Shown here in pieces: positions 14,162-41,672 of a stretch of DNA of 64,000 nt. The stretch covers positions 186,001 through 250,000 of IMG/VR virus record IMGVR_UViG_3300032242_003291; one strand, 5' to 3'. The position numbers and the translations under genes were made by a program. The notes beneath the pieces were generated by a model. The model was given only the letters and a program-made list of their open reading frames with translations, made no database searches and was not told where the DNA came from. Each line of letters starts with the position of its first letter. Within the stretch, counting starts at the first letter, position 1.

Positions 14162-14770
14162 TTAAAATCCGTTTTCCTCCGAACATGTGATTCTATAAAT
14201 ATCAAAAAGATATTCACCAAACCAATCTTTACACATTTCAACTAAACTATCATGAATATCATCATAATCTTCACTCTCAAACAAATCCTCATCAATAGTT
14301 AAAAAATTACTAACCGCATACTCTATAACATTATCGGCATAATCAAACTCATCACCAAAATCATCACATAATGTGGGATAATTAATCTCACCGTCTGTAA
14401 TAAATTTCCTCATATTTTCTTTGTTTGCTCTTCTTCTGAACCAAAGAGGTGCGTCGGATTCATCGAGAAACTTGTGTTTTGTTTTTTCAATTTGTCTCTT
14501 AATGCTGTATTCTATTCGTTTTTCTTGTTCTTCTTTATTTAATTGAATAAAATCTTCATCTCTCATCACATAAGCCATTTTTCTTTGTTCATCGTATTCG
14601 TAATTAACATAAATAAACTCTTCCTTACGATTCACAACACTATACTTAACAAGACGTCCATTAAAATTAAAGATTCCACCTTTAACATTACGTTCAGGGT
14701 CTTTGGCATGTCTTTTACGAGACGCATTTAACAATCTTTCGTATTGGTCTTCAGTTAAGATATATTTCAT
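14162..14770 (-). CDS. leader-bearing two-module protein
   Basis: MKYILTEDQY; LDE then WFRRR module; TATTTAT at 14776-14782. Confidence 0.8.
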   Translation of the reverse strand: MKYILTEDQYERLLNASRKRHAKDPERNVKGGIFNFNGRLVKYSVVNRKEEFIYVNYEYDEQRKMAYVMRDEDFIQLNKEEQEKRIEYSIKRQIEKTKHKFLDESDAPLWFRRRANKENMRKFITDGEINYPTLCDDFGDEFDYADNVIEYAVSNFLTIDEDLFESEDYDDIHDSLVEMCKDWFGEYLFDIYRITCSEENGF

Positions 14771-14785
14771 TAAAGATAAATACCT

Positions 14786-15103
14786 TTATTTAACAAAGAC
14801 GGCTGGTCTTCTAAATTCTTTAATTCCAACTTTTGTGTTTAGAAAATTTTCAAAGTAATTTCGTATGTACATACTGATTCGTTCAGTAAAACGTTCTCTA
14901 GTATGTAAATTAGCTGAAAGTATATCATTTTCTGCTTCAGGCGTTATATCAAATTCTACCACAATATAAAGGGTATCTGACCATTCACTATAATTTATAG
15001 GTTCAATTTTTAGGTGCGTCATCCAACTTGCTTTGAGCATCGGAACAAAATGTTCCATAGCCCTTTCAAATGAATTGTGTGACCAATTTCTACTACTTGA
15101 CAT
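14786..15103 (-). CDS. hypothetical protein (Y-x-G family, divergent)
   Basis: 105 aa, coupled to the upstream gene. Confidence 0.7.
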   Translation of the reverse strand: MSSSRNWSHNSFERAMEHFVPMLKASWMTHLKIEPINYSEWSDTLYIVVEFDITPEAENDILSANLHTRERFTERISMYIRNYFENFLNTKVGIKEFRRPAVFVK

Positions 15104-15803
15104 ATTCTAATATTGTTTCGGAATAAGAAGGTGAAAAAATAATTAATGGTGTATCCCTATGGTTATTTTCGAACATACAAGTAATTAAGGGCATCATATC
15201 CTCATAAAGTTTTTCTCTAACTTTTCTTTCAATGTTAGGACTCATTAATTCAGAATGATGTGTTGGTGAAACCGTTATGTGAATCTCCAAAGGTCCATAT
15301 ATAATCGACGAACCGTACAAATTACTACCACTAGTACCACCGCTACCCAAGTGAGGTTTAATTCTTACTTCAGTGATATCCAATATCCAAACATACTTTT
15401 TCATTAAAAAATGTTTGAGTGGTAGGTGGTCCAAAACCAAAGGGTCTTTTGGTGCAGTAAGGGTTGATGTGACATCAGTTATAGTTGTACCACACCATCT
15501 ATCATAATGGTATTCAGATAATGATGACGTACCTGTTGGTACATTTCTTGTTTTTTCTTTTTTAATCTTGTATACAATCTCAGCAACCATTGGTGGCGCT
15601 GGCAGCTCCTTAGGTGTTTGAGGTATTGGTGGTGGAGGTGGTTCGGGAATATAAAAACCCCCTCCATTAATTCTTCGGGTAATATCCTCAATTCTTTCAC
15701 CATCATTATCAATATACCCATGATTTCTAGCCATATCAGGATACCCGTTAGGTAATAATGGTGGTCTACCAGTCAATCTACTTAAAAAATTTAATAAATT
15801 CAT
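15093..15803 (-). CDS. Pro-rich hypothetical early protein
   Basis: -7 element TACTTTTG at 15810-15817; PEPPPPPIP tract; start re-assigned to 15803. Confidence 0.75.
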   Translation of the reverse strand: MNLLNFLSRLTGRPPLLPNGYPDMARNHGYIDNDGERIEDITRRINGGGFYIPEPPPPPIPQTPKELPAPPMVAEIVYKIKKEKTRNVPTGTSSLSEYHYDRWCGTTITDVTSTLTAPKDPLVLDHLPLKHFLMKKYVWILDITEVRIKPHLGSGGTSGSNLYGSSIIYGPLEIHITVSPTHHSELMSPNIERKVREKLYEDMMPLITCMFENNHRDTPLIIFSPSYSETILEYVK

Positions 15804-15834
15804 ACTACGCAAAAGTAGTAAAAGTTTTGGAAAT

Positions 15835-15861
15835 AAAAAACCCCACCTTGAGAGTGGGGTT
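15835..15861 (-). terminator. intrinsic terminator
   Basis: aaaaaaccccac-loop-gtggggtt. Confidence 0.75.
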
Positions 15862-15865
15862 GATT

Positions 15866-16732
15866 TTATGATTCTACTCTTAAATAATTAAGATTATAAC
15901 CCATTCCTTTTAATAACTCTTTAATATTTTCTTTTAATGGTCTTCTAGCACTATAAGAATCATCTTTATATGAAAATTCTATAAATCCACCTAAATTTTG
16001 AGTTCCAGGAGTAAATTTAATTGCATGTATTACTCTTTTAGCATCAGGAAGCTCTTTTATTTTTTTCTTAATTACTTTATTCAAATCATTTTTGACCCAT
16101 TCATCAAGTCCAATATATTCTACACTATGAAAACTAAAAATAAGTTGTCCATGAGTTGGGTTTCCAAGTTCAACCCCTAAAAAACCTTTTATTTTGTCAG
16201 TTAAGTCTTTGGAAATTTCATTCATCTTGTATTTTCTATTATCTTCGGATTTGATAAATCTTTCCCAATCAACTTCTAGTTTAGCATAAACTTTGAATGG
16301 TGAATCTTCGGTGATAACAATTTTCATAAATTCAGGTAAATCCAATTGTTCAATAAAAAACTCTAATGGTTTTTTATATCTCTCTGTAAATTTTTCTTGT
16401 GAACGAAGTGATGGTAATTTGTGTTTTCCTAATTCCACCAGTTTTCTTCCTATATTCGATGCATTTGTTAGACTATTTCTCCATGTAACCATAACGTCTT
16501 CAGCTCTCATTCCATTATCATTACAAAAATCTGAAATATATTTTTTTACTAAATAAGATAATGGGTATTCTCCTATTTCATCACCATGATTCTTTTTAAC
16601 CCATGGTCTAAAATAATGTAAGAATACCTCAACAAAATCTTCATCATCATAAATTTCATCATTGAAAGATTCAACAATCCGATTGATAACTTTGATAAGT
16701 TCAGATTCCGTAAGGGTTAATGTTTTTTTCAT
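15866..16732 (-). CDS. leader-bearing hypothetical protein
   Basis: MKKTLTLTESELIKVINRIVES; TATTTAT at 16738-16744. Confidence 0.8.
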   Translation of the reverse strand: MKKTLTLTESELIKVINRIVESFNDEIYDDEDFVEVFLHYFRPWVKKNHGDEIGEYPLSYLVKKYISDFCNDNGMRAEDVMVTWRNSLTNASNIGRKLVELGKHKLPSLRSQEKFTERYKKPLEFFIEQLDLPEFMKIVITEDSPFKVYAKLEVDWERFIKSEDNRKYKMNEISKDLTDKIKGFLGVELGNPTHGQLIFSFHSVEYIGLDEWVKNDLNKVIKKKIKELPDAKRVIHAIKFTPGTQNLGGFIEFSYKDDSYSARRPLKENIKELLKGMGYNLNYLRVES

Positions 16733-16784
16733 CTTATATAAATACCTTTTAAATTAAAAATCCCTCGTAGTGAGGGATTTGTGG

Positions 16785-16895
16785 TTAGGATTTTAATTTC
16801 TTTAATACTTCGTGATTCTTTTTAATCAATTCGGCAGTTTTAACACCTGATTTTTGGCTTCTCATTGCCCTTGGTTTTTTAGCTCTTGTTCCCAT
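16785..16895 (-). CDS. small basic protein (36 aa)
   Basis: Not in ORF track; MGTRAKKPRAMRSQKSGVKTAELIKKNHEVLKKLKS; TATTTAT at 16909-16915, terminator at 16756-16780. Confidence 0.7.
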   Translation of the reverse strand: MGTRAKKPRAMRSQKSGVKTAELIKKNHEVLKKLKS

Positions 16896-16915
16896 ATTAT
16901 TTTAATTGATAAATA

Positions 16916-17299
16916 TTACCAACTTTGACGTTCTACGTGTTTCACAGGTAATCCCGTATGTTTTGTAAACCATCTTTTGAATAATTCTTGCCATCTTGGA
17001 CCAAAGTATCCATCAAGGGCATCATATTTTTTACTATCAATTGTAATCATAGGACATTTATGTTCAGGTAGGGGGTCCTCATTTGGGTTGTCACATAATG
17101 TATAAAACATATGTGGTTCATCACCATTACCTTCAAAATCTGGGTCAAAGAAAAAAAACATCTCATAGCTTGTATCCATTTCATCATGATAACTTTTTTT
17201 ATCTTCCCATCCTCCTCCTGGTACAAGATGACCATCAAAATATTTCAAGATTGTATCTATCAATTTATTATTTTGTTGCTCTGTTATAATGTATTTCAT
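16916..17299 (-). CDS. leader-bearing WF-family protein
   Basis: MKYIITEQQ; LDGYFG...FKRWFTKHTGLPVK; close paralog of 10468..10842. Confidence 0.8.
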   Translation of the reverse strand: MKYIITEQQNNKLIDTILKYFDGHLVPGGGWEDKKSYHDEMDTSYEMFFFFDPDFEGNGDEPHMFYTLCDNPNEDPLPEHKCPMITIDSKKYDALDGYFGPRWQELFKRWFTKHTGLPVKHVERQSW

Positions 17300-17605
17300 T
17301 TAATTATTCCAATTACTGTCACCCAACACACGAGTATTGGTTTTATCGAATACAACATTTATCCCTGTATAATCTTTAATTTTGGACCTCAATTTCATTT
17401 TAACTTGATGACTAAAGGCGGCTCTATTAATGTCATCCATACTACTCCACCACTCTTCAGGGACATAAAACACGGCATGTAATGTAAATTCACCTGGTGC
17501 CGTGTGACGTACGTCAAAGGCAACATGTTTTATTGGGTCAGGTAATATGTTTGGTAATAACTTTTCTAACGTTGATTCTACTTTGTCTTGGTCCATATTA
17601 TTCAA
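17300..17605 (-). CDS. hypothetical protein (Y-x-G family)
   Basis: LRSKIKDYTGINVVF. Confidence 0.7.
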   Translation of the reverse strand: MNNMDQDKVESTLEKLLPNILPDPIKHVAFDVRHTAPGEFTLHAVFYVPEEWWSSMDDINRAAFSHQVKMKLRSKIKDYTGINVVFDKTNTRVLGDSNWNN

Positions 17606-17912
17606 TTATTTGAAATGCAGAAATTACCATATCATCGGGGTAATGTTTATCAAACCACTTTTCCAATAGTTTTTCCGTTTCTCTTTTATCTAAACCAAAT
17701 AAGTTCATCATATGATGAAACAAATGTTCCTCAACACCCAAATGATAATCCATATAACGAAACATTGTTTTCATATCTTTATCAACAATCTCAAAATCTC
17801 CTTCTGTAGCATTGATGTGGTCTAAATCAACTTTTTTAAGTTCTCCGACAGTATCTTTAAGATATTTGTCAACGAAATCCACCAATCTATTTTCTGTTAT
17901 TAGATACTTCAT
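17598..17912 (-). CDS. leader-bearing WF-family protein
   Basis: MKYLITENRL; MNLFG...LEKWFDKHY; start re-assigned. Confidence 0.8.
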   Translation of the reverse strand: MKYLITENRLVDFVDKYLKDTVGELKKVDLDHINATEGDFEIVDKDMKTMFRYMDYHLGVEEHLFHHMMNLFGLDKRETEKLLEKWFDKHYPDDMVISAFQIIE

Positions 17913-17916
17913 TTTA

Positions 17917-18180
17917 TTATACTGCTGGGTCTTTATCGATAAATACAATAAAAATATCAATTCCCATATAGTTCATTATGTCACTTTTAATCTTCTCACG
18001 TATTTTAGTTTCATATTCTGACCTCAAATAATTTTCGGTTAATATAACAATAGTTAATTCTCCATGAGCTTCACCTAATATTAGTCTTGAAACTTTTGAT
18101 ATATTCTGACCTTTAATCACATCTATTATGTATGGTTCAAGTTTTTTATATTTTGATAAATCAGATTTTATTTTCATCAA
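17917..18180 (-). CDS. hypothetical protein (Y-x-G family)
   Basis: IKSDIMNYMGIDIFIVF. Confidence 0.7.
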   Translation of the reverse strand: MMKIKSDLSKYKKLEPYIIDVIKGQNISKVSRLILGEAHGELTIVILTENYLRSEYETKIREKIKSDIMNYMGIDIFIVFIDKDPAV

Positions 18181-18476
18181 TCTACTTTTTTCACTTCAAC
18201 ACCAAATTTATATTCAAAAAACTTTCCAACAAATACACTTGTCTCAATATAGCTTTTACCAAATAAATCCATTAAAGTTTTTCTAAACTCTTTTAGAAAC
18301 CACAATCTACCATCCTCACCGTCATATTCCATTTCAACTTCATTGTTCGCTTCTCCGTTACGATTTTCAAGGACAATAAATCTATCGAATTCAATAATTT
18401 CCTTAGCGTCAATCCACGAATTTATATAATCCGCCATTAACATATCTATCTTACTTTCTTTAATAATATATTTCAT
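18177..18476 (-). CDS. leader-bearing WF-family protein
   Basis: MKYIIKESKI; MDLFG...FFEYKFGVEVK. Confidence 0.8.
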   Translation of the reverse strand: MKYIIKESKIDMLMADYINSWIDAKEIIEFDRFIVLENRNGEANNEVEMEYDGEDGRLWFLKEFRKTLMDLFGKSYIETSVFVGKFFEYKFGVEVKKVD

Positions 18477-18478
18477 AG

Positions 18479-18832
18479 TTACATTCTGTCTACTGTTGTA
18501 CAATTTTCACCTGTAAAGTTATTATACCATTCTAAAAATAATGTACCAATGTGATTAAAATTAAAACCAAAAAGTCTTGAGACCGTATCCCACATTATTG
18601 GCCTTACTAAAAGCATTCTACCTTCTTCAGTTTCATCTTCCTCATCGTCATCAAAATTATAGGCTTCAAACATGGCATCAGATGGATGTTCATTTTTTCC
18701 TCGAACATATAATCTTGTCATATCTTCATATTCGTATCCTTCATCGGAAACCTCCCAATCATAAGAATCAAGATAATTAAAGACCATCTTCTTCATTTTT
18801 TCGTACTGAGATTCTGTTATAATGATTTTCAT
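18479..18832 (-). CDS. leader-bearing WF-family protein
   Basis: MKIIITESQY; SRLFG...FLEWYNNF. Confidence 0.8.
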   Translation of the reverse strand: MKIIITESQYEKMKKMVFNYLDSYDWEVSDEGYEYEDMTRLYVRGKNEHPSDAMFEAYNFDDDEEDETEEGRMLLVRPIMWDTVSRLFGFNFNHIGTLFLEWYNNFTGENCTTVDRM

Positions 18833-21985: not shown

Positions 21986-22011
21986 AAAAAACCCACCTTA
22001 AGGGTGGGATT
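21986..22011 (-). terminator. intrinsic terminator
   Basis: aaaaacccacc-ttaag-ggtggg. Confidence 0.75.
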
Positions 22012-22285
22012 ATATTTTATCTACTGCTTTTGTAAACTTGTGACATTTTTCGGATACACCTCCTTCTTCATGGTCAGTAATGGATAATTTTACATTATCA
22101 TAATGAACGGTCATATCAGGATGGTGATTTTGTTTATCTGCAATTTTCATTACCGAATTAACAAATGGCATAACCTCTTTATAGTCTTTGAAATAGAATG
22201 TTTTAATAAGTTTATTACCACTTTCTTTCCAATCACTTTTATTCATAATTGTTCTTTTTTGTTGTTCTGTGATAATATATTTCAT
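22010..22285 (-). CDS. pterin-4-alpha-carbinolamine dehydratase (PhhB-like) with N-terminal leader
   Basis: W..SGNKLIKTFYFKDY..VMPFVN.V...ADKQNHHPD...ITDH..GGVSE; MKYIITEQQ leader. Confidence 0.85.
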   Translation of the reverse strand: MKYIITEQQKRTIMNKSDWKESGNKLIKTFYFKDYKEVMPFVNSVMKIADKQNHHPDMTVHYDNVKLSITDHEEGGVSEKCHKFTKAVDKI

Positions 22286-22297
22286 AATGAGACTACT

Positions 22298-22780
22298 TTA
22301 CCAAGTTCTACATGCCCAATAACGTGGCTTCCATCTTGGTCCAGGATTATCACAATTCATTCTCGCTCTAAAGTTTCTTCTACGTTCGGGATTATTCTTT
22401 TTAATTGTCATTCTTTTACCGTGAGCAGATTTTCCACCAAACCCAAAGTTAACCTTAACAACCTTACCCTTATCATTTTTAACATATACCTTGGACTTCT
22501 TCACATCACCTTGCATAATCTTTCCAAGTTGAACTTTACGTCCTTGATATTCAGCCTCATTTATGGAACCTTCTTCAAATTCTGTTTCTTCAACTGAACC
22601 ATACTCATCTTCATATAAAGTTTCATTTTTAGGCTTTATACCTTTTTTCTTCATGTTGATGGCAATTGCTGCTTGTTGTGCAGGACTTGATGCTTCGTCC
22701 ATTTCATTTTCAGATTCTTTAAGAACACGTTTAACCAATTTCATCAAATCGGATTCTGTAAGTCTAACTATCTTTGGCAT
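22298..22780 (-). CDS. leader-bearing multi-module protein
   Basis: MPKIVRLTESDLMKLVKRVLKES; modules after MDE and INE; C-terminal RARMNCDNPG...YWACRTW; TATTTAT at 22796-22802. Confidence 0.8.
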   Translation of the reverse strand: MPKIVRLTESDLMKLVKRVLKESENEMDEASSPAQQAAIAINMKKKGIKPKNETLYEDEYGSVEETEFEEGSINEAEYQGRKVQLGKIMQGDVKKSKVYVKNDKGKVVKVNFGFGGKSAHGKRMTIKKNNPERRRNFRARMNCDNPGPRWKPRYWACRTW

Positions 22781-22813
22781 AATAAATGTTTTATTATAAA
22801 TACATACGGAAAT

Positions 22814-22837
22814 AAAAAACCCACCATAAAGGTGGGT
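22814..22837 (-). terminator. intrinsic terminator, near-identical to 24325-24349
   Basis: aaaaaacccaccataaaggtggg. Confidence 0.75.
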
Positions 22838-22846
22838 CAATATTTA

Positions 22847-24286
22847 CTATTGTTCTAACAAATTAAGTTGTGATTTCAAATACTCTGATTGTTTTGCAAT
22901 TTTCTTTAAAAATTCTTGATAATATTTTTTATTATACTGATAAAGTCCATTTAGATGTTGGGAACCTTTGTTTCCCAATAATTCAAGACTTTCTTTTGAT
23001 AATGAATTTTTACCTGAGGCATATCCAATTAAATTATCCAATTCTTGTTTAGCACCTTTAGCTCCGACTTTTTGAACTAAACCATTAATTTCGCTTGTCA
23101 TATTATTTAAAATCATCTGATTATTTGCAACTATTTCTTGTGGATGATAAAGATATTGTTGATATAAATCTTTATACTTTTCACCAGCATTTATTGCGTT
23201 ATCAATACCTTGACCTGTTTCAGACGCTTTAGCATATGCTGATTTATAGTTAGATAATTCAGTTTGTTTAGCGTTTTGAATGGCTTCATAAGAATTATTC
23301 AATTTTGGACTAACCAAAGATGGGTCCTTGATGTGAGTTGCTTCATGATTTAAAACTTGTCTTATTTCTTCTTCACTCTTACCTGCCAATGCGTCCAAGT
23401 TCATATAAATTTTATTTCTACCAACAGCTTCACCAGCAAAAGTTTCGCCAGGAAAACTTTTAACAATCACATCAACTTCTTTTGTAGTACCATTAACAAT
23501 CAAATCCAATTTTAAAAAACGTTGTTCCCCTTGTTTAATTATTGGGACCAATTGTGAAATTTGATTTAATTCTGATTCTGCAAATTTAATTCCTCCTTGA
23601 ACTGCCATTCTGGCCAACTTATATGTATTGCCTGACGCGGACTTCAAATTATTTAAAAATCCTTCTTTGGTTATTTTATTTGAAAGAAATTGTTGGAGTA
23701 ATTCATTATATTTTTGTTGTCCAAATTTTGAAATAAAATTTGGTTTTAATGATTCGACACTATTAACAATGGGAGTAAGTTTTGTTGACGCACTTTCTAA
23801 ACCTTGTTTGACTAAGACCTCATTTTCTTTAATAGCATTCAAAGCAGTTGCTTCCGCAGGAGAGAAAATTTTCACACCTTTAGCAATTTTGCTTCCCAAT
23901 GCTGCCATTGCCTTTGAACCTAATTGTTTTACACCAGGAATCTCACCAATGAAAGGTAACAAAGAAAAGGCTGCGGTTATACCCGCAGCTTTTGTATCTC
24001 CTTCATTGTAATAAATTGCTGAATCAGCCAATCCAATACCCGCAGAAATAAATGGACCTACAGCAGGAATAAAGGCCGTACCGATGGCGAGAAATCCCAT
24101 AAGTGTATGTACATCAAATGGTACCCCTTTGCCGTTTGTTGGGTCAATTGTTCCTGATTTAACATTTGTTGTTGGCTGAAGAAAATTTGATGGTGCTGAT
24201 GGTGTAAGAGTTGCGGCAGGTTTGACTCCCTTAACTTGTTCAGATAAGACTCTATTAAATTGTGATTCTGTGACAATAATTTTCAT
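22847..24286 (-). CDS. leader-bearing polymorphic-toxin-like protein with hydrophobic pre-toxin segment and HExxH motif
   Basis: MKIIVTESQF..VLSEQ; AIGTAFIPAVGP...EGD...AAFSLLPFIG; LNHEATHI; TATTTAT at 24292-24298. Confidence 0.6.
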   Translation of the reverse strand: MKIIVTESQFNRVLSEQVKGVKPAATLTPSAPSNFLQPTTNVKSGTIDPTNGKGVPFDVHTLMGFLAIGTAFIPAVGPFISAGIGLADSAIYYNEGDTKAAGITAAFSLLPFIGEIPGVKQLGSKAMAALGSKIAKGVKIFSPAEATALNAIKENEVLVKQGLESASTKLTPIVNSVESLKPNFISKFGQQKYNELLQQFLSNKITKEGFLNNLKSASGNTYKLARMAVQGGIKFAESELNQISQLVPIIKQGEQRFLKLDLIVNGTTKEVDVIVKSFPGETFAGEAVGRNKIYMNLDALAGKSEEEIRQVLNHEATHIKDPSLVSPKLNNSYEAIQNAKQTELSNYKSAYAKASETGQGIDNAINAGEKYKDLYQQYLYHPQEIVANNQMILNNMTSEINGLVQKVGAKGAKQELDNLIGYASGKNSLSKESLELLGNKGSQHLNGLYQYNKKYYQEFLKKIAKQSEYLKSQLNLLEQ

Positions 24287-29891: not shown

Positions 29892-30725
29892 TTACATTTT
29901 CATACCCGATTGATTCAAACACTCAACCAATCTACGTAATTCTTCTGCAGCTGCAGGGTCTTTTTTAATTCCAAAGGTTACAAGTAAATCCACAACAATA
30001 TTATCCAATTGTTTAGTTTCTTCTCTTTTCATAAATTCAGAAATTTTAGGGTAACCACCTTTTGCAATACACGCTTTAATTGCTGGCATTGCATTTGCAA
30101 TTGGTTTAGCAATTGCAGAATTCATTTTGTTCTTGATTGATGGTAATGCATTTGCGATTGGTTCATCAATAACTGATTTTAAACTTGGTTGATAAGGTAA
30201 TTGTTGTTCATTAAGTCCAGCAACTCCAAGTAATGCTCCTTTTGCCACATCACCCCATGAACCACCTGATGATTGAGGTTTGTTTCCCATTCCTGATTGC
30301 ATTTGTTTGATGAATGGTGCTGCAATTCCCGTAAGACTTGTTGCAATGTTAGAAAGGGTTTTTGAAATATCTCCCCCTGTTACAGCATTTTTCAATGTTT
30401 GATAATGTTGACCCAATCTTGATTTCTCTTGGTCAAGAACTTGATTAAAAGATTTAGCATCTCCGCTTGCCGCCGATTTAATCATGTTAAACAATGAAGT
30501 TGTTGGTAATGTTTGAAGAATGACATTTCCTAATTGACCATTTATTTCAAGGCCATTTCCAACAGCGCCTAACGAACTTTGTTCATTAACCAATGGTTTA
30601 GAATCCCCAAGTTTAGAGTTAATTAATTTAGAAAAATTCTCAGTCATTACTTTCATTCCTCCTGAGTGTTGTTCACGGATTGCATTTTTTTCTTCTTCCG
30701 TTAAGTTATTCAATATGTGCTTCAT
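29892..30725 (-). CDS. leader-bearing helical protein with internal L-N-E junctions
   Basis: MKHILNNLTEEEKNAIREQH; LVNEQ, LNEQ; TATTTAT at 30740-30746. Confidence 0.8.
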   Translation of the reverse strand: MKHILNNLTEEEKNAIREQHSGGMKVMTENFSKLINSKLGDSKPLVNEQSSLGAVGNGLEINGQLGNVILQTLPTTSLFNMIKSAASGDAKSFNQVLDQEKSRLGQHYQTLKNAVTGGDISKTLSNIATSLTGIAAPFIKQMQSGMGNKPQSSGGSWGDVAKGALLGVAGLNEQQLPYQPSLKSVIDEPIANALPSIKNKMNSAIAKPIANAMPAIKACIAKGGYPKISEFMKREETKQLDNIVVDLLVTFGIKKDPAAAEELRRLVECLNQSGMKM

Positions 30726-31274: not shown

Positions 31275-31736
31275 TTAGAATTGACTAGTTGCACCTGTTG
31301 CACCCCCACCATATTGTGTTTGGTTAGGAGCTCCTCCAGTTGCTTTGTTTGGGTATAATTTATTTTTTAATTGAAGTGCATATGCAATTGCGTTTTGAGA
31401 TGCTTTTTGTGAATTAGGTGAAACATTAAAAGATTTCACACCTTTATTACCTTGATAAAAAACTTCTAGAGTCCATGGATTTCTTGATGGGTCATCTCCA
31501 CAATTTAAAAATACGTTAATACCTGTACTGTGGTTGTTGAAATACATATACTTACAACAAGCATATGGACATTTTTTCCATGTTGTTGCTTTGGACTCAT
31601 CAACCAATTTGAATCCCTCTTTAGTTAATTGAGGTACGATTAATTTATTCCAATAATCGAAATCTTCTTGCTCTTTAATTACTCTATTCACCAAACGAAC
31701 CAAATCGTTTTCTGTTAATCTTATTATTTTACTCAT
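31275..31736 (-). CDS. leader-bearing hypothetical protein
   Basis: MSKIIRLTENDLVRLVNRVIKEQ; TATTTAT at 31752-31758. Confidence 0.8.
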   Translation of the reverse strand: MSKIIRLTENDLVRLVNRVIKEQEDFDYWNKLIVPQLTKEGFKLVDESKATTWKKCPYACCKYMYFNNHSTGINVFLNCGDDPSRNPWTLEVFYQGNKGVKSFNVSPNSQKASQNAIAYALQLKNKLYPNKATGGAPNQTQYGGGATGATSQF

Positions 31737-32503: not shown

Positions 32504-32546
32504 AATGGTAAAACCACATTTGGTTTAGAATGTGGGGATAACTTCT

Positions 32547-32714: not shown

Positions 32715-32750
32715 TCTTTTTTTCGGGATTATTTCGTATCTTTGTACCCT

Positions 32751-33387: not shown

Positions 33388-33421
33388 GTGTATAAGTATA
33401 CTTACGGAACACATAAAAATA

Positions 33422-33551: not shown

Positions 33552-34161
33552 TCCCTCGACACACTTTTCCCCCACTTTCTACCACTATTGTTTCCCACAT
33601 TTTACCACCGAAATAGTCCCCACGTATATAAAAACACCACTTTTTCCCCTCTGTAGGGGTCTACAGGACCAGTTTTTTACTATATATAAAACCTAGCAAA
33701 AAAAGGAGTAATAAGTGTGAGACGCGGGGAAACGAACGTAGTGAGTGTTTCATGACTATTCAGTCATGGTTTAACCCCCCTTCAAGGAGGGAACCGATAT
33801 GTTTTATTACCTCCAACGAGGTGACAACTCAGTCCCCCACTCGTGGTGGAGACCTGTAGTCTGTGATAATATATCGTGTAAATGTATGATATTTCATTTT
33901 ATCGTGGGAATCCACGATGCTTATATATCATCTCATCCACATATGTAATGTGTCATAAGTAAACTTATAGCTTGACCCGTAGGGATGTTTTGTAAAGTTA
34001 TAGCTTGACACACTATATCACATATTAAAGTCTCTTCATATATGTGGGGAATATATTTGGTGGGGGATGTTCCCGACATGGATGTCGGAGACATATGGAT
34101 ATCCATATTTATCCGCAAATATACGATTGCATATCCGATATTATGTTATACCTTTGTGATT

Positions 34162-34862: not shown

Positions 34863-35183
34863 ATGAAGATAATCATCACAGAAGAACAATACGACAAAAT
34901 CATTAGTCAGAAATCTCTTTTTTGGATTAAGAGAAGAATTGATTTGGTTAAAGACGGATTGAAAGAAACCTTTGAACTTATGGAGTATGATATTTGTCGA
35001 ATCGATGATTATTATAAGTTTGAAAAGAAATTCTTCTCTGTATTAATGGATGGTCTTCATCCATATTTTTATGATGATGAAAGTTTTGACCACGCAGAAT
35101 ATGATGCTATGTATAATACATTAAAGGATTTATACTATGTTGAGTGTACCGAGTTTTATTTTGACGGTAGAGAACGCTGCTAA
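34863..35183 (+). CDS. leader-bearing WxKRR-module protein
   Basis: MKIIITEEQY; FWIKRR; TATTTAT at 34852-34858. Confidence 0.8.
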   Translation: MKIIITEEQYDKIISQKSLFWIKRRIDLVKDGLKETFELMEYDICRIDDYYKFEKKFFSVLMDGLHPYFYDDESFDHAEYDAMYNTLKDLYYVECTEFYFDGRERC

Positions 35184-36281: not shown

Positions 36282-36383
36282 TATGGAAGATTGGATTGGA
36301 TTCTTTTATATGTTAATAATTAAAGGAATGTTATCAGCTCTAATTGTGATTGGAGTTTATGCCCTTATTAAAAGAAAAAGAAA

Positions 36384-37124
36384 ATGAATTATAAAGCCGT
36401 TGTAATGTCTGACCTTCATTTGGGTATGAAGGACTGCAAACCACAAAAGATATTGGACTTCTTGGATTCTATGAGGACCGACATCTTAATATTAAATGGA
36501 GACGTTATCGACTTTGATGCTCTTCGCAGAGGAAGCAAATGGAAAAATAAACATACAAAAGTTATTACCAAGATATTAGATATTTCTCGTCATGTTCCCG
36601 TGGTTTATATTCGCGGGAACCATGATGATGATATCCGTGAGTTCTTCGGAATGGAAATTGGTAACATACAATTTACAGATGAATATATTATTGATACTAA
36701 AGAATGGGTTGAAAATGATGTCTATCACAATAGAAGATATCTTGTTTTTCACGGTGACCAAATTGATGTCACATCCAAGTTCAAACTACTTACTCAGATT
36801 GGCTCTGTGGGCTACGACCTGGCTCTAAGATTGAATACAATCTATAACCGTTACAGAGAATGGAGAAAACTTCCTTATTATTCCATATCAAAAAGGATTA
36901 AAGAAAACTTTAAGAAAGCATTGAGCTTCATTAATAACTTTGAAGATAATGCCGTTCAGTATGGTAAAAGAAAAGGATGTAATGGTGTGATATGTGGGCA
37001 CATACATATTCCTGTGATGAAAGAAATTAACGGAGTTAACTATTATAACTCAGGTGATTGGGTTGAAAACTTTACAGCAGTTGTTCTTACTACAGATTAC
37101 AAATGGGAGTTAATTCATTTATAA
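36384..37124 (+). CDS. LpxH-like metallophosphoesterase (UDP-2,3-diacylglucosamine diphosphatase family)
   Basis: SDLHLG, NGDVID, RGNHD, FHGD, CGHIH, NSGDWVE. Confidence 0.85.
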   Translation: MNYKAVVMSDLHLGMKDCKPQKILDFLDSMRTDILILNGDVIDFDALRRGSKWKNKHTKVITKILDISRHVPVVYIRGNHDDDIREFFGMEIGNIQFTDEYIIDTKEWVENDVYHNRRYLVFHGDQIDVTSKFKLLTQIGSVGYDLALRLNTIYNRYREWRKLPYYSISKRIKENFKKALSFINNFEDNAVQYGKRKGCNGVICGHIHIPVMKEINGVNYYNSGDWVENFTAVVLTTDYKWELIHL

Positions 37125-37757
37125 ATTTTCTCTTATTATTTTACAAGGTGAACCGTACGCAATTACGTTATCGGGAATGTCTTTTGTTACGACTGAACCC
37201 GCACCTATGATTGTGTTCTTTCCTATCTTTACTTCATGTAATATGTTTGTCCCCATCCCTATTGTTGTACCTTTACCTATGGTCACGTTTCCTGCGATGT
37301 TGGTACCAGGATTGATTGAACAATAATCACTTATGATTGTATGATGACCTATGGAAACATGTCTATTAATGGATACAAAATTACCTATCTTTGTTTGTGC
37401 TGCAATTGATACTTTGGAATTGATTAATACCCCACATCCTATTTTGCTTGTATGGGAAATATCTAAACCACTATGAATTACACTAATAAACTTGTTGAAG
37501 TCAGGATTTAATTCTTGTATTATTTTTATTTTATGTTGAGGTTGATATACCCCGAGAACAAATGCTGTGTAGTCATCTAAGTTAACTTCATTCAAAACTT
37601 CTATGTTAAATCTGTCGTGATTAAACGTATTCAGTATTGGTAAATCTAAATTGTTATAGATTGTTATCTTTGGCATTTGATGAATTGAATATAAGTTATC
37701 TAATATCATCGTGACAATATTATCTCCTTTACCTATAACTAATAATTTTGTTCCCAT
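37119..37757 (-). CDS. NeuD/PglD-like hexapeptide sugar acyltransferase
   Basis: Left-handed beta-helix repeats, IGHHT, IGAGSVVTKDIP, AYGSPCK. Confidence 0.9.
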   Translation of the reverse strand: MGTKLLVIGKGDNIVTMILDNLYSIHQMPKITIYNNLDLPILNTFNHDRFNIEVLNEVNLDDYTAFVLGVYQPQHKIKIIQELNPDFNKFISVIHSGLDISHTSKIGCGVLINSKVSIAAQTKIGNFVSINRHVSIGHHTIISDYCSINPGTNIAGNVTIGKGTTIGMGTNILHEVKIGKNTIIGAGSVVTKDIPDNVIAYGSPCKIIRENL

Positions 37758-38556
37758 ATCCTTTTTTTCTTAATTCGTATGATGTGTAATGAGTCATATC
37801 TAATTCATTCATTATTCTATGTGCTCGTTTTAATAACTCTATGTTGGTTGTCTTTTCCTTATCTTTGAAATATAAGTTATCTTCTAATCCGATTCTTATT
37901 CCATCGAAATCTAACAGACCATAAGTTGTGCTTTTTAGTTGTTGTGAACCTATCCCACCTAAACAAACGTATGAATTTGTTGGTAGATTAGATTTTATTG
38001 TTGATAATGTTCCGAAGTCACACTGACCGTTATATATGTTTCCCAATATAACGTTAATGTGATATGGTGGATTTAATCTGTTCTTTGAAATAAGGTAATT
38101 GGTATAGTTTAACATCCCTGTATCAAAACATTCTATCTCAGGCTGAACCCCGTGTTTGTTCATCTCTTCTATCAAAGATAGTATCATCTCAGGTTGATTT
38201 AGAGATGCTCCTGATGGGAAGTTTAATGATGACATCGTTAATGAACCCATGTCAGGATATAATTGTAATACTTCTGCTCTTTGTTCTAATTCAGGAAAGT
38301 TTCTTCCAGTTAGTGAGACGCAAATCAATAATTCAGGACAATGTTTTTTTACACCTTCTATAATCTTTTGATACACTTCTTTCTTGTAAGTGTTCTTTAA
38401 TGTATTTTCATCCCGAGCATGTAAATGCACAATCGATATACCCACTTCATGTGCGTTATGAATTTCCTCTATTATTTCGTTCGGTAATAGTGGAGCAAGA
38501 GAATTATCCCTTGTTGTTTGAGTACCTGTTGGTGTGAAATTGATTATTTTATGCAC
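37729..38556 (-). CDS. beta-keto acid cleavage enzyme (BKACE/Kce, DUF849)
   Basis: IINFTPTG, GISIVHLHARD, PEIECFDTGM, IRIGLEDN; probable GTG start overlapping the upstream stop. Confidence 0.9.
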   Translation of the reverse strand: MHKIINFTPTGTQTTRDNSLAPLLPNEIIEEIHNAHEVGISIVHLHARDENTLKNTYKKEVYQKIIEGVKKHCPELLICVSLTGRNFPELEQRAEVLQLYPDMGSLTMSSLNFPSGASLNQPEMILSLIEEMNKHGVQPEIECFDTGMLNYTNYLISKNRLNPPYHINVILGNIYNGQCDFGTLSTIKSNLPTNSYVCLGGIGSQQLKSTTYGLLDFDGIRIGLEDNLYFKDKEKTTNIELLKRAHRIMNELDMTHYTSYELRKKGYGNKIISYR

Positions 38557-39499
38557 TTGTAATATATGATTTGATTTTGAACACTTCCCTAAATTGATTA
38601 TCGAATGCTTTTTCATAAATAACTTTTTGTGAGTTATCAACTCTTACGTGATTGATATCATCAAAAATTCCCAAAGGTCTTATGTGCCAGTGGTAAGGTT
38701 TTGTTGTTATGTTAACAATTGTAGATTTATTTACAATTACAACAATTTCTTCAGAGGTGTCTTTCACGGATTTATAAAAAATGTTCAATGTTTTGTCTGA
38801 TGGATTATAGTACAAAGTGAAATGGACCCCCCTATGAAAAACTTTATCTCCCCTTTGAAATTTATCTTCCAAAGGTTCATCTTTGAATAATATTTTTCCC
38901 GAGTTTAATAGAAGGTTTTTTGTGAAATGCTCTAATTGGGTTTCTTTCATTTTTTTCATTTCTCTTTCAATATATTCCTTGTCATAATTTTTTATTTTTT
39001 CAGGTAAAGAACTTACTTTCATAGACTTGAAAGAACCAAAAAGAAACCCGTCTTCTTGCCCATTATTAGTATAAATTACAGAATCATACCTTTCTAAAAA
39101 ATTACTATTTTCGTCAACTAAATTTTTATCTAACAGCAAACAATCATACTCGATATGATGAATATTTTGATATCCAAAATTTATTGCTATTTGGCAAGCA
39201 ATCGATAACATTCTATAAATCGCAAATCCATAAAAATATTTATTAAAAAATCTTGATTTTATTTTTGAATTTCCAAATTCGAAATACATGTAGCCTAACA
39301 AATCATAATCCTCTGAAATTTCATTTTTATAATCATAAACATAATAATGACATTTTTTTTGAATATGAATTGGAACATGCGAATGAGAAACTAACGCAAT
39401 ATGTTTACCACATTCTAAAACAGAATTAATACATTTTTCTAAAATTATTTCTTGTTCTTCTGTTGGACAATAAGCAGAAATAAAAATTAAATCTTTCAT
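38549..39499 (-). CDS. hypothetical glycan-modification protein (GT-like N-terminus)
   Basis: IALVSHS, HHIEYDC; TATTTAT at 39509-39515. Confidence 0.6.
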   Translation of the reverse strand: MKDLIFISAYCPTEEQEIILEKCINSVLECGKHIALVSHSHVPIHIQKKCHYYVYDYKNEISEDYDLLGYMYFEFGNSKIKSRFFNKYFYGFAIYRMLSIACQIAINFGYQNIHHIEYDCLLLDKNLVDENSNFLERYDSVIYTNNGQEDGFLFGSFKSMKVSSLPEKIKNYDKEYIEREMKKMKETQLEHFTKNLLLNSGKILFKDEPLEDKFQRGDKVFHRGVHFTLYYNPSDKTLNIFYKSVKDTSEEIVVIVNKSTIVNITTKPYHWHIRPLGIFDDINHVRVDNSQKVIYEKAFDNQFREVFKIKSYITSA

Positions 39500-39566
39500 T
39501 CCCCAAAAATAAATAAAAATAGTTTTTAATCAATAAAATGTTTTACCCTAAAAAGTATTTATTAAT

Positions 39567-39884
39567 ATGGACTATATTATGAACCAAAGACAACTTGATA
39601 AGTTGATGAAACCATATTGGGATATGCATTTTAATGATGCATACTTTGGTAAAGTTAATTTGAGTGGTGAAGATTGGGTAGGTTTGATTAAAAAAGATTC
39701 TAAAGGTATTCCTGAATTATTGTTGGGACATCCTGAAGATAGAGAAGAAATGATGTGGTATTGTAATGGACCAACTTTTAATGGTGGACATACACTTTTT
39801 AGTATTAAGCGTAGTGCATTTAATGAATCTATGAAAAGATATGTTAAGGATAGATTTAACATTACAACAAAAGATATTATGTAA
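39567..39884 (+). CDS. WF-family protein with degenerate leader
   Basis: MDYIMNQRQL; TLFS...MKRYVKDRF; TATTTAT at 39556-39562. Confidence 0.7.
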   Translation: MDYIMNQRQLDKLMKPYWDMHFNDAYFGKVNLSGEDWVGLIKKDSKGIPELLLGHPEDREEMMWYCNGPTFNGGHTLFSIKRSAFNESMKRYVKDRFNITTKDIM

Positions 39885-40139
39885 CTACTTCTTTTTTACC
39901 TTAACACAATTTGGGTATCTCTTTCCGAACATTGTCTTCATCCCCTTTTGAGTATATCCTTTCCAACATCTCTCAGTTATTTCTGATTCATTATTCTCAT
40001 GTTTGAAGTGTTCGTGGTCGGGCTCCATTTCGAATGCTGGTGCTGCGTAAGCCCCAACGCCTTCTTTTTCTTCTTGTTCTTTCGAAGGTAAATTGTTCTC
40101 AATGTGTTCCCTGAGTATTTTTTTGATAAGTTGTCTCAC
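39885..40139 (-). CDS. leader-bearing multi-module small protein
   Basis: MRQLIKKILREH; ITE then RCWKGYTQKGMKTMFGKRYPNCVK; TATTTAT at 40144-40150. Confidence 0.8.
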   Translation of the reverse strand: MRQLIKKILREHIENNLPSKEQEEKEGVGAYAAPAFEMEPDHEHFKHENNESEITERCWKGYTQKGMKTMFGKRYPNCVKVKKK

Positions 40140-40167
40140 AATAATAAATATCCTATATTTGAATTAG

Positions 40168-40470
40168 ATGGAAAGATTAATCAATTCTTTTTTGGAAACT
40201 AAATACACTGATAAACTCCGTATTAAAACTAGATATATTACTGAAGGTATAAAGTGTATTGAATATAATATATCATCAGGTTATGATGATATAATAACTG
40301 TTTATCTTTATTCCGAACACCAAAAAGGTTTTAAGGTTTTTGGTCCTTTAGCTAAAGAATTGGAATCATGGTTCGATATTAAATTTAGAGGGAAAGTAGA
40401 AGAGCTTGTATTCTCTTGGTGTAAAACCAAAATAGATTTTAATAATAAAAACCTAGAATATTTTGTATAG
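40168..40470 (+). CDS. WF-family protein without leader
   Basis: LESWF...LVFSWCKTK. Confidence 0.7.
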   Translation: MERLINSFLETKYTDKLRIKTRYITEGIKCIEYNISSGYDDIITVYLYSEHQKGFKVFGPLAKELESWFDIKFRGKVEELVFSWCKTKIDFNNKNLEYFV

Positions 40471-40583
40471 TGTTAATGTCTATAATGTGGATGATGTTTG
40501 TGCCAATGACGATGATGTTTTGTGGTTACACATGAAACCATTAAAATTGAAATGATTGATATTAAAAATAACTTTTTCATAAT

Positions 40584-41672
40584 TTACCAATTAAAATCTG
40601 TATTAGTATTTGTTGATTCGTAATTAATTATTAGTGGCATCCCCGTTGATATTCGTAGTCTTTTCTCTAATTCATAAGCTATATCATCAGCATCAAAATC
40701 ACCCCTCCTTATTGAAGAATAGTAAACCATAAGTTTTATATGCATGTACTTTTGTTCTATGGTCTTATTGCTATGCATAATTGTAACCCAATCCGCATCG
40801 TTAACCTCAATTTTTTCTAATTCTTCGAGTTGGTTACAATGTTCATCATTACTGTAATCAGGATAATCAATCATACCATCTTCACATTCTTTTCGAATGT
40901 GTTTTATCTCTCTATCAATAACTTCTTGGAATAATTGTCTATATTTTTGTGATTCTAAAATAAGATTATATTGTGATTCTGTTACGATGTATTTTTTTTT
41001 AGATTCTTTGATATCATCAATTAACATTGATTCGTATGGAATACCAAGTTTGTCCAAACTCCAAAGTATTTGATTATATTTTCCATCATAAAGATTTTTT
41101 GAAAAATCTTTACCTTTCCAATGTTTTGTTGGTGCTGAACGAGTAACGGCTTTGTGAATCCAACTGTCGGGACTTGAATGTTTTACGTTGTGTAATGTAA
41201 TTAAATGAGTACTAGGTTCGTTAAGAAATTTTTTATAATCTTTTGAGTTTGGGTCACCCTCAATTGCTGGTGTAACAAATACCGCGCCAGCGTCAACTAA
41301 TTTGTTTATATCAAATGGTAATCTTTCAGGAGATTCATTTCTACCCTCTTGATAATCATAAACAATTGATTCGTTCAAACCATGTGTCTCTCTATATCTT
41401 CTGTTAATGTATCCAGCAAATTTTTTATAAAGGTACCAATATAATTCGTCTTTTTCTGCAAGACTTACTTTACGACCTGTTTGTTCCCATATATAATCGA
41501 GAATTTTCTCATTCAACCAATTACACACCTCTTCCACACAATCTGTGGCATCGCTAAATGCACCCAAATCTAAATCATAATCTAATACGACGTTTAATTC
41601 ATCCAACAATTCACCATCATCCAATCTTCTTTTAACATGTGGAGACATTGACTCAAACAAAGATATTCCCAT
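40584..41672 (-). CDS. polyprotein-like three-module protein with an internal leader copy
   Basis: LFES / LNES / IKESKKKYIVTESQYNLILESQ junctions; TATTTAT at 41678-41684. Confidence 0.8.
   Translation of the reverse strand: MGISLFESMSPHVKRRLDDGELLDELNVVLDYDLDLGAFSDATDCVEEVCNWLNEKILDYIWEQTGRKVSLAEKDELYWYLYKKFAGYINRRYRETHGLNESIVYDYQEGRNESPERLPFDINKLVDAGAVFVTPAIEGDPNSKDYKKFLNEPSTHLITLHNVKHSSPDSWIHKAVTRSAPTKHWKGKDFSKNLYDGKYNQILWSLDKLGIPYESMLIDDIKESKKKYIVTESQYNLILESQKYRQLFQEVIDREIKHIRKECEDGMIDYPDYSNDEHCNQLEELEKIEVNDADWVTIMHSNKTIEQKYMHIKLMVYYSSIRRGDFDADDIAYELEKRLRISTGMPLIINYESTNTNTDFNW

Follow-up and report, generated by a model that had tools for sequence, protein, structure and literature searches.

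Small interchangeable modules joined at prohead-protease-type motifs in predicted cargo proteins of a T4-like jumbo phage

We examined a 64,000-nucleotide window of a 317,259-bp T4-like jumbo phage that encodes a gp23-type capsid protein, a gp20 portal and a gp21-type Peptidase_S77 prohead protease. The window carries many small genes in which one to several compact protein modules follow a conserved N-terminal leader. In this phage and in thousands of uncultured relatives, nearly every joint carries a hydrophobic-x-Glu motif of the kind that the T4-type head protease cuts. We recognized four leaders: type A, MKYIITESQYxx[LI]xE; type B, MxKIIRLTESDLxRLVKRV[IL]KE; type C, MNLQENIxRI[LK]xE; and type D, a 48-aa leader ending KP[LI]VNE. 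The features are listed below in window coordinates (↓ marks a joint, the putative cut position).

40584..41672 (-), three-module gene of 362 aa: short N-peptide MGISLFE↓S, then M1, an LNE↓S linker, M2, an internal leader and M3
41379..41648 (-), module M1 (aa 9-98), helical, of the x-[KR]-R-R superfamily
41367..41378 (-), joint LNES (aa 99-102), in a linker of lower model confidence
41013..41366 (-), module M2 (aa 103-220), alpha/beta; when it stands alone elsewhere it sits behind a different leader, MNLQENIxRI..
40950..41012 (-), connector (aa 221-241) with IKE↓S, IVTE↓S and LILE↓S, a full type-A leader placed internally, model pLDDT about 48-50
40587..40949 (-), module M3 (aa 242-362); elsewhere a free-standing 123-145-aa protein starting with the same leader
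14162..14770 (-), two-module gene of 202 aa: type-A leader plus N module (14459-14770), joint KFLDE↓S, then a W-F-R-R-R C module (14165-14458)
34863..35183 (+), type-A leader plus a single W-I-K-R-R module (106 aa)
22298..22780 (-), type-B leader (aa 1-22, ending LKE), SSPAQQAAIAINMKKKG cassette (aa 30-53), acidic spacer ending INE (aa 54-75) and basic terminal domain (aa 76-160 = 22301-22555; phrog_7595 / DUF5872-like)
39885..40139 (-), small gene whose last 28 aa (39888-39971) are the mobile CWKGY...PNCVK mini-cassette, following ITE
29892..30725 (-), type-D leader (aa 1-48 = 30582-30725, ending LVNE↓Q) plus cargo
10468..12036 (-), three consecutive small genes (10468-10842, 10842-11441, 11443-12036), each starting with a type-A leader
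15866..18832 (-), run of further leader-bearing genes, with starts at 16732, 17299, 17912, 18476 and 18832
22010..24286 (-), two more type-A leader genes flanking the 22298 gene: 22010-22285 (91 aa) and 22847-24286 (479 aa, cargo without an assigned function)
31275..31736 (-), type-B leader gene (153 aa)
1546..2589 (-), type-B-like leader followed by a peptidoglycan-binding domain (347 aa)
59449..59814 (-), type-B leader plus a peptidoglycan-binding-like cargo (121 aa)

An initial annotation, made from the sequence alone, had described several of these genes as polyprotein-like concatenations of modules at [IL]-x-E junctions, and this observation held, with every motif it listed present where it had been placed. 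We first dissected the 362-aa gene, in which LFE lies at aa 5-7, LNE at 99-101 and IKE at 221-223, and an internal leader, KKKYIVTESQYNLILES, spans aa 225-241. An exhaustive phmmer search found 118 cluster representatives whose matches fall into three blocks, aa ~5-98, ~103-220 and ~227-362. Among the hits, the architectures were M2 (52), M3 (35), M1 (16), M1-M3 (11), M1-M1-M3 (3) and M1-M2-M3 (1), such that the modules occur alone, duplicated or in other orders. An AlphaFold2 model (mean pLDDT 86.9) likewise gave three folded domains, 9-96, 120-222 and 241-362, and the low-confidence linkers 97-119 and 223-240 are exactly where the motifs lie. The internal leader is retained in M1-M3 fusions down to about 30% identity.

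The genes at 14162, 22298, 34863 and 39885 behave the same way, as does the first of two breaks claimed in 29892. Homologues of the 22298 gene differ by whole cassettes inserted exactly after the leader (LKE22), after MDE29 and between NE[ST] and LYE, and the terminal domain starts after INE75; MDE is not a canonical [IL]xE. The CWKGY...PNCVK piece of the 39885 gene is a mobile mini-cassette found in many other contexts, usually after [ILM]-T-E. The first 48 aa of the 29892 gene, ending LVNE, form a leader up to 96% conserved that homologues fuse to many unrelated cargos, with 24 alignment ends piling up at aa 49-51. In contrast, the second break claimed there (LNE, aa 171-173) is not supported, since the real break is near aa 153. 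In a syntenic 329-kb relative, the two halves of the 14162 gene are two separate genes, each with its own leader, and the joint keeps KFLxE↓S.

The initial annotation had also proposed that a W/H-x-[KR]-R-R module recurs in the 14162, 34863 and 40584 genes. In-genome blastp and phmmer searches did not link the three copies, but profile-profile comparison did, matching the M1 family to the 14162 C-module family (probability 93%, E 3.5e-7) and the 14162 family to the 34863 protein (probability 93%, E 2.6e-7). The direct comparison of the M1 family with 34863 was not significant.

Because [IL]xE is a common tripeptide, occurring once per 82 aa in the proteome, we asked whether its placement could reflect chance in an AT-rich, Ile/Leu/Glu-rich proteome. 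Per-gene enrichment is weak (p 0.03-0.25 by shuffling), so raw counts are not beyond chance. Position relative to module starts, which the initial annotation had set as a test, is far from random: the motif lies directly before M1 in 27/33 homologues (background 0.04), within 5 aa of M3 in 37/47 (background 0.08) and before the terminal domain of the 22298 family in 55/55, whereas it directly precedes M2 in only 4-7/22. The sequences are related, so binomial p-values overstate their independence, but these placements, together with P1 being Glu in 68/76 across homologues, refute the chance explanation, which we regard as extremely unlikely. In the internal leader and its homologues, column counts are E232 36/43, [LI]238 37/39 and E240 35/40. 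At joints, P3 (aliphatic) and P1 (Glu) are conserved at the protein level while P2 and the flanks vary.

We next considered whether the joints are DNA-level recombination sites, with the peptide motif a by-product. Consistent with this possibility, cassettes are flanked by repeated short sequences (KES..E.[TD]E on both sides of the CWKGY cassette and NE[ST]LYE on both sides of the acidic cassette), and the 14162 fusion point lies inside a leader. However, before the terminal domain of the 22298 family, the best-sampled joint, P3 is Leu or Ile in 55/55 using seven codons, P1 is Glu in 55/55 (GAA 40, GAG 15) and P1' is Ala in 55/55 using all four codons, while P2 varies. Selection therefore acts on the protein, and the motif persists at about 30% protein identity. 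Microhomology may well help shuffling but cannot explain the conservation, and these codon data largely refute this very unlikely alternative.

The phage carries a T4-type head module comprising a gp23-type capsid protein (PF07068, 7e-71), a gp20-type portal and a Peptidase_S77 (PF03420, 9e-22; phrog_207, 2.5e-43; T4 gp21 structure 5JBL, E 1.4e-12), with the protease flanked by the portal and capsid genes. Proteins of the head module served as internal positive controls. The first 60 aa of the capsid protein hold 4 of its 7 [IL]xE (Fisher p 0.0025), with INE↓A 11 residues and LYE↓N 20 residues before the first block that aligns with mature T4 gp23, which there has 27 preceding residues, so the exact site is uncertain. 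The two scaffold-like proteins next to the protease are among the most [IL]xE-enriched in the genome (14 versus 7.8 and 13 versus 5.9 expected), and the protease has ILE-8, like LIE-9 of T4 gp21 (PMC9026906). Docking of the protease with a joint peptide gave no answer.

A further link to the protease came from the terminal domain of the 22298 family, a widespread module. It carries an N-terminal extension ending in [ILVM]xE in 11/11 S77-positive genomes but starts directly at Met in 5/5 complete S77-negative podo- and siphoviruses (Fisher 2.3e-4). This comparison mixes a few lineages (T4-like versus podo- and siphoviruses), so shared ancestry could produce it. In Kyanoviridae phage C48C1, the extension starts MKKFKQYIDE, with aromatic residues at positions 4 and 7, Ile at 8 and Glu at 10, the positions that matter in the T4 capsid targeting sequence (CTS), MKTYQEFIAE (PMC8442874, PMC9026906). 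Only this extension matches these key positions, the leaders of the window being unrelated to the CTS in sequence. In two relatives, the leader gene lies within two genes of the capsid gene (one short ORF between, on the opposite strand). In this genome, a module-bearing gene starting MNKRRINE↓A lies three genes downstream of the capsid gene (two ORFs between, one of them on the opposite strand), and a type-B leader gene abuts the head cluster.

It remains possible, although doubtful, that another phage or host Glu-specific protease cuts the chains in the cytoplasm to give ordinary intracellular proteins. The leader genes sit in a hyperplastic region of small genes among sugar-modification genes, 80-140 kb from the head module, and many cargos are acidic. 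On the other hand, we noticed no other protease candidate, the motif equals the T4 gp21 specificity, the extension tracks S77 presence and leader genes lie next to capsid genes in relatives.

With moderate confidence, we read the flagged genes as part of a set of about 25 leader-bearing genes, most at window 1,500-41,700, that encode precursors of capsid-internal, probably ejected, cargo proteins of the T4 kind. In this view, the leader would take the chain into the assembling prohead core, as the 10-aa T4 CTS does, and the S77 protease would then cut after each exposed [ILVM]-x-Glu in the flexible joints, removing leaders and acidic spacers and freeing the modules. Because fused and separate genes would then give the same products, gene fusion, fission and cassette exchange at the joints would be nearly neutral, which would explain the rampant shuffling. 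Peptidoglycan-binding cargos behind leaders B and D fit proteins that act on entry. The initial annotation's interpretation, that modules are shuffled between genes and released as separate peptides by the prohead protease, is partly supported. Our analysis establishes the autonomy of the modules, their shuffling across hundreds of homologues, the conserved motif at joints, the presence of the protease and the co-occurrence of extensions with it; targeting into the head, presence there, cleavage itself and delivery into the host are inferred from sequence alone, although release by the protease passed every indirect test we ran. Some joints are non-canonical, including MDE and KNE (P3 Met or Lys) and many V-x-E, and no T4-type late promoter pattern was seen.

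Alternatively, the leaders and connectors could be functional peptide elements, such as short amphipathic helices for oligomerisation or docking to a partner, or simply flexible linkers, within chains that stay intact; the conserved Glu and aliphatic residues would then serve binding or helix capping. Conservation does extend beyond the putative cut (T231, Q234 and Y235 in leader A, including SQY; the whole helix of leader B, including SDLxRLVKRV), which is not the case for T4 internal proteins, so the leader does more than carry a cut site. AlphaFold also predicts a short helix at aa 232-239, leader-like motifs also occur at C-termini, and the modules are acidic, unlike known packaged T4 proteins. 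We nonetheless consider this reading unlikely, as the same hydrophobic-x-Glu precedes unrelated modules (M1, M3, CWKGY, the terminal domain and the capsid pro-region) and is kept by very short N-peptides such as MNLFE↓S or MRNINE↓T. Furthermore, free-standing versions in S77-negative phages lack it entirely, and extensions otherwise unrelated in sequence always end in it.

The closest known system is that of the T4 internal proteins IPI/IPII/IPIII and Alt, which shares the T4-type head module with an S77 protease and in which a conserved short leader on otherwise unrelated, fast-evolving cargo genes ends in Ile/Leu-x-Glu, with processing determinants at CTS residues 8 and 10 (PMC9026906, PMC8442874). 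T-even phages carry varied CTS-bearing proteins (PMC9026906). Here, the leaders all end in [ILV]-x-E, but they comprise four unrelated types of 7-48 aa, none homologous to the T4 CTS, on about 25 genes instead of 3-5. Several modules per chain are linked by internal leaders and connectors, whereas T4 internal proteins are cut only once (PMC8442874). T4 internal proteins are also highly basic (PMC8442874), whereas most modules here are acidic (net -8 to -18): M1, M3 and the W-x-R-R-R modules have pI 4.1-4.8, and only the terminal domain of the 22298 gene is basic (pI 10.9). High basicity is a feature of T4 internal proteins but not of all gp21 substrates, Alt being one example.

The inner-body and ejection proteins of the jumbo phages phiKZ, 201phi2-1 and SPN3US are numerous head-internal proteins cut after Glu at a three-residue motif by gp21-like proteases, with long propeptides carrying several redundant sites and paralogous families sharing N-termini (PMC5694885, PMC9026906, PMC10052503). 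Their motif has a small P3 residue (S/A/G-x-E or A-x-E), whereas P3 here is Leu, Ile, Val or Met, as in T4 aliphatic; there, propeptides are discarded to leave one mature product, whereas here several autonomous modules would be released. We found no sequence relation to those proteins and no hits in cultured phages. Polyvalent proteins of phages and conjugative elements similarly combine two to fifteen independent, shuffled domains, and are proposed to enter the host with the DNA and be released by proteolysis (PMC5512222). Our chains hold two to six modules. However, polyvalent proteins are large, with recognisable enzymatic or anti-restriction domains and often their own peptidase, whereas these modules are 25-130 aa with no Pfam or PHROG function and no structural match, the protease is a separate head gene and the joints carry a defined motif. 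Lastly, viral polyproteins such as those of picornavirus-like viruses also concatenate functional units separated by short protease recognition sites in flexible linkers. In this dsDNA tailed phage, the protease would act in trans and, by analogy with T4, only inside the prohead, and the same units are also encoded as separate genes in close relatives.

The window, at bases 186,001-250,000, lies in a single 317,259-bp contig with 33% G+C, which represents a distant T4-like jumbo myovirus. The genome encodes a gp23-type major capsid protein (PF07068, 7e-71), a gp20-type portal (PF07230, 3e-78), a T4-type large terminase and a gp21-type prohead protease (Peptidase_S77, PF03420, 9e-22; T4 gp21 structure 5JBL, E 1.4e-12). 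The nearest capsid proteins in cultured or deposited phages, from an uncultured 484-kb phage, Microcystis phage Mel-JY01 and Flavobacterium phage immuto, are only 42-44% identical. Megablast of 5.4 kb of the region and tblastn of the 362-aa product of the gene at 40584-41672 against 50,697 phage records returned no match. The initial annotation had assumed a T4-type head protease, which is therefore correct for this genome; that enzyme cuts after Glu in Leu/Ile-x-Glu (PMC5694885, PMC9026906).

Counting the motif alone provides weak evidence. [IL]-x-E occurs 1,207 times in about 99,300 residues of a crude proteome, or one per 82 aa, which is 1.27 times the composition expectation. Shuffling each flagged protein gave only p = 0.03 for the 40584 gene (10 observed vs 5.5), 0.04 for the 29892 gene, 0.19 for the 14162 gene and 0.25 for the 34863 gene. 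What matters is where the motif sits. We therefore asked whether motif positions coincide with module boundaries, a check proposed at the outset, and found that they largely do: the concatenation of modules at such junctions described in the initial annotation holds, with one proposed break in the 29892 gene as an exception.

We first established that the modules are real. An exhaustive phmmer search of 1.84 billion cluster representatives with the 362-aa product returned 118 proteins, whose matches fall into three non-overlapping blocks (M1, M2 and M3, in order along the chain). Re-scoring with the three pieces revealed M2 alone or with foreign parts in 52, M3 in 35, M1 in 16, M1-M3 in 11, M1-M1-M3 in 3 and M1-M2-M3 in 1. 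Recurrence of the same architecture in homologues P0069, P0070, P0072 and others led us to reject a sequencing or frameshift artefact as the source of the internal leader. MAFFT alignments of whole or cut homologues misplaced modules, so a separate, curated alignment was used for structure prediction. AlphaFold2 (mean pLDDT 86.9) predicts three compact domains, 9-96, 120-222 and 241-362, separated by a linker of pLDDT 66-76 (97-119) and one of pLDDT about 48-50 (223-240). Four of the ten [IL]xE of this protein (E7, E101, E223, E240) lie in the 49 linker residues (Fisher p 0.03). Foldseek of the three-domain model against PDB and AlphaFold DB clusters found nothing significant, and Pfam and PHROGs searches of the flagged proteins yielded only phrog_7595 (unknown function), phrog_22713 and peptidoglycan-binding hits.

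The joints are conserved across homologues. M1 is directly preceded by [IL]-x-E-[SNTQ] in 27 of 33 distinct occurrences, against a background of 0.04, whether it is N-terminal (as in MNLFE|S or MRNINE|T) or internal. M3 is always preceded by the type-A leader, one of four conserved leader types (A-D), whether it opens a free-standing 123-145-aa protein or lies inside a fusion; in fusions it is itself preceded by [LI]-[KS]-E-S-K-K. Column counts in this region are E232 36/43, [LI]238 37/39 and E240 35/40. M2 is an exception: when free-standing it carries another leader (MNLQENIxRI[LK]xE), and only 4-7 of 22 occurrences have the motif right at its start.

We next turned to the other flagged genes. 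Sixty-eight homologues of the 14162 gene show its C-terminal W-x-[KR]-R-R module in three settings: alone behind a type-A leader (112-118 aa), including on 323- and 330-kb contigs; behind the same N module as in the window; and in front of three other C modules, with joints such as G-LHE|Q, M-FE|S and ITE|RCWKGY. In a syntenic 329-kb relative, the two halves are separate genes of 99 and 113 aa, each with its own leader. The window gene is their fusion, and the joint retains KFLxE|S from the second leader. Profile-profile comparison links this module to M1 (prob 93%, E 3.5e-7) and to the 34863 protein (prob 93%, E 2.6e-7). These links support the claim in the initial annotation that a W/H-x-[KR]-R-R module recurs in the three genes, although in-genome blastp and single-sequence phmmer failed to connect them and M1 vs 34863 directly is not significant.

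The 22298 gene belongs to a family of more than 7,900 homologues. Aligned length variants differ by whole cassettes inserted exactly at the joints that had been proposed from the sequence. These are the CWKGY...PNCVK mini-module after the leader, an 85-aa acidic helical cassette between NE[ST] and LYE and, in IMG/VR versions, further cassettes and internal type-A-like connectors. The basic terminal domain (phrog_7595; DUF5872-like by language-model neighbours) is preceded by [IL]-x-E|A in all 55 distinct nucleotide versions. P3 is Leu or Ile through seven different codons, P1 is Glu through GAA (40) and GAG (15), and P1' is Ala through four codons, while P2 and P4-P8 vary. The constraint therefore acts on the peptide, and we rejected DNA microhomology as its explanation on this codon evidence. 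A 379-aa relative chains six such modules, with KNE|T, VNE|V, LNE|S, ISE|E, LAE|A and VYE|A between them.

In the 29892 gene, the first 48 aa (type-D leader, ending KPLVNE|Q) are up to 96% identical in proteins whose remainder is unrelated, including peptidoglycan-binding, OmpA-like and annexin-like cargos, and 24 alignment ends pile up at aa 49-51. A second break placed at LNE 171-173 in the initial annotation is not supported, because 55 alignments end at aa 152-153. Profiles of the four leaders find about 25 leader-bearing ORFs in the genome, about 20 of them in the window. Nearly all leaders are at N-termini, the internal copy being in the 40584 gene.

We then asked whether the protease of this phage is likely to use the same rule. 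The capsid protein has 4 of its 7 [IL]xE in the first 60 residues (p 0.0025). INE|A lies 11 residues, and LYE|N 20 residues, before the first block that aligns with mature T4 gp23, but that block starts at mature residue 28 in T4, so these distances do not place the exact cleavage site. The two scaffold-like proteins beside the protease are among the most motif-enriched proteins of the genome. The protease itself, at genome 106,397-107,113, starts MKNLR-ILE, like LIE-9 in T4 gp21 (PMC9026906). A predicted complex of the S77 protease with the aa 212-256 joint peptide scored 0.28 against a mark of 0.34, and we do not use it as evidence either way.

The terminal domain of the 22298 family also occurs in cultured phages, which enabled a comparative test. 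In complete genomes without S77 it starts directly MAKY[KQ]GR or MATYKGK (80-93 aa); these are Pelagibacter siphovirus Kolga, podoviruses HTVC202P, HTVC111P and HTVC026P, and Roseobacter phage CRP-901. In every S77-positive genome it carries an N-terminal extension that ends in hydrophobic-x-Glu. These genomes are this phage, six IMG/VR contigs of 217-336 kb that are 65-100% complete, and four cultured carriers: Pelagibacter phage HTVC008M (LEE|A), phage C48C1 (LTE|A), Flavobacterium phage immuto (LDE|G) and Methylophilales phage Melnitz (MME|S, at the end of a 650-aa multi-module protein). The proteins in the cultured carriers are AGE60465 of HTVC008M, CDS0096 of C48C1, gene 171 of immuto (vB_FspM_immuto) and gene 18 of Melnitz. 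The resulting contrast is 11/11 against 0/5 (Fisher 2.3e-4), although the lineages are not independent. Contigs of 45-60 kb that seemed to carry extensions without S77 are only 11-31% complete fragments and hence uninformative. Among 76 IMG/VR relatives of the Kolga protein, 68 have Glu at P1 and 7 start at Met; P3 is I or L in 35 and mostly V or M otherwise. The extensions are unrelated to each other except for their last three residues. The C48C1 extension opens MKKFKQYIDE, sharing aromatic residues at 4 and 7, Ile at 8 and Glu at 10 with the T4 capsid targeting sequence (CTS) MKTYQEFIAE, in which residues 4 and 7 govern targeting and residues 8 and 10 govern processing (PMC8442874, PMC9026906).

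The Melnitz protein (Melnitz-3, MZ577098.1 14914-16866), annotated as a hypothetical protein, chains a nucleotidyltransferase-like N domain, a CWDTHKQVG...PNCVP mini-module, further modules and the terminal domain after MME|S. An Atlas cluster of 724 members combines DUF5824 with CTP_transf_like. The same basic terminal domain occurs as a free-standing 83-aa ORF in an archaeal spindle-shaped virus (Nitrosopumilaceae spindle-shaped virus, BK067787.1 ORF8), so the module crosses virus realms.

Gene neighbourhoods provide a further connection to the head. In two large relatives, the leader-plus-terminal-domain gene lies within two genes of the capsid gene, with one short ORF between them and the gene on the opposite strand. 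In this genome, a 226-aa module-bearing gene starting MNKRRINE|A (genome 100306-100986, minus strand, outside the window; positions 306-986 of sequence L006) lies three genes downstream of the capsid gene, with two ORFs between them, one on the opposite strand. It carries the KVNGKHPPCGR...YPKCR module that relatives fuse in front of an internal leader, and it ends in a leader-like motif, LTDIIRRVIRENFN, at its C-terminus. Together with a second C-terminal example at genome 216753-217220, this indicates that leader-like elements are not only N-terminal. A type-B leader gene abuts the head cluster, and two leader-B genes in the window carry peptidoglycan-binding domains.

The best reading of these data is a T4-style capsid-targeting and processing system extended to multi-module chains. 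In this view, leaders would bring the chains into the prohead, the S77 protease would cut at exposed aliphatic-x-Glu joints, leaders and acidic spacers would be lost, and the modules would stay with the DNA to be ejected. Processing would make fused and split genes equivalent, which would explain the fusion, fission and cassette traffic. Our analysis demonstrates module autonomy, shuffling, motif placement, protein-level constraint and co-occurrence with S77, whereas targeting, cleavage and ejection are inferred from sequence alone. The interpretation offered in the initial annotation, that modules are shuffled between genes and released as separate peptides by the prohead protease, is thus supported only in part. 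Several features count against the reading: some joints are non-canonical, leader residues beyond the putative cut site are conserved, and cargos are mostly acidic, unlike the basic T4 internal proteins (PMC8442874). The T4 late-promoter motif TATAAATA is not enriched before leader genes or head genes, so it offers no basis for inferring expression timing. The M1, M3 and W-x-R-R-R modules are strongly acidic (pI 4.1-4.8, net charge -8 to -18), in the range of DNA-mimic anti-restriction proteins, but this is a resemblance in charge only.

The closest known system is the T4 internal proteins and Alt, with the CTS and gp21. Ejection proteins of the phiKZ and SPN3US type share cleavage after Glu and multi-cut propeptides, but they use a small residue at P3 (PMC5694885, PMC10052503). 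Polyvalent proteins (PMC5512222) share the idea of many shuffled domains delivered with the DNA. A search of the available literature on DUF5824 and DUF5872 in connection with prohead proteases and propeptides found no description of this arrangement. We regard the chains as a putative extension of the T4 scheme and not as demonstrated members of it, since their presence in the virion and their cleavage remain inferences.

If the inference holds, the T4 capsid-targeting and processing pathway, known from a handful of internal proteins, would be a large and evolvable delivery platform in abundant environmental phages. It would also give a simple sequence rule for finding proteins that enter the host with the DNA, which are likely first-line counter-defence or take-over factors in uncultured phages, and it would explain why these genes fuse, split and swap cassettes so freely. 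A broader possibility, which we raise tentatively, is that T4-like phages of aquatic bacteria, from 140-kb Kyanoviridae to 300-kb jumbo phages, run a general 'cargo cassette' system. Dozens of small accessory domains would be free-standing genes in podo- and siphoviruses, whereas in S77-encoding phages they would be placed behind capsid-targeting leaders and strung into chains, which the prohead protease would cut into individual proteins injected with the DNA. The protease-site connectors would also serve as the joints at which cassettes are exchanged. If so, hydrophobic-x-Glu-delimited modules behind a conserved leader would be a sequence rule for predicting the packaged proteome of uncultured T4-like phages.

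A sugar-modification gene set, which may modify DNA or the cell surface, sits among the leader genes at window 35583-39499 and 43353-46868:
35583-36281, GT2 glycosyltransferase
36384-37124, metallophosphoesterase
37119-37757, hexapeptide acyltransferase
37729-38640, beta-keto acid cleavage enzyme (BKACE; PF05853 5e-60)
43353-44474, UDP-galactopyranose mutase (PF03275 2e-76)
44471-46868, GT2 glycosyltransferase

G+C rises locally to 41% at window 32001-34000, against about 31% elsewhere; the ORFs there (32532-33143, 32057-32503) have no Pfam hit, and there is no tRNA. The window also contains an N6/N4 DNA methyltransferase at 61060-61947 (PF01555 2e-32) and a single tRNA-Met gene at 56893-56965.
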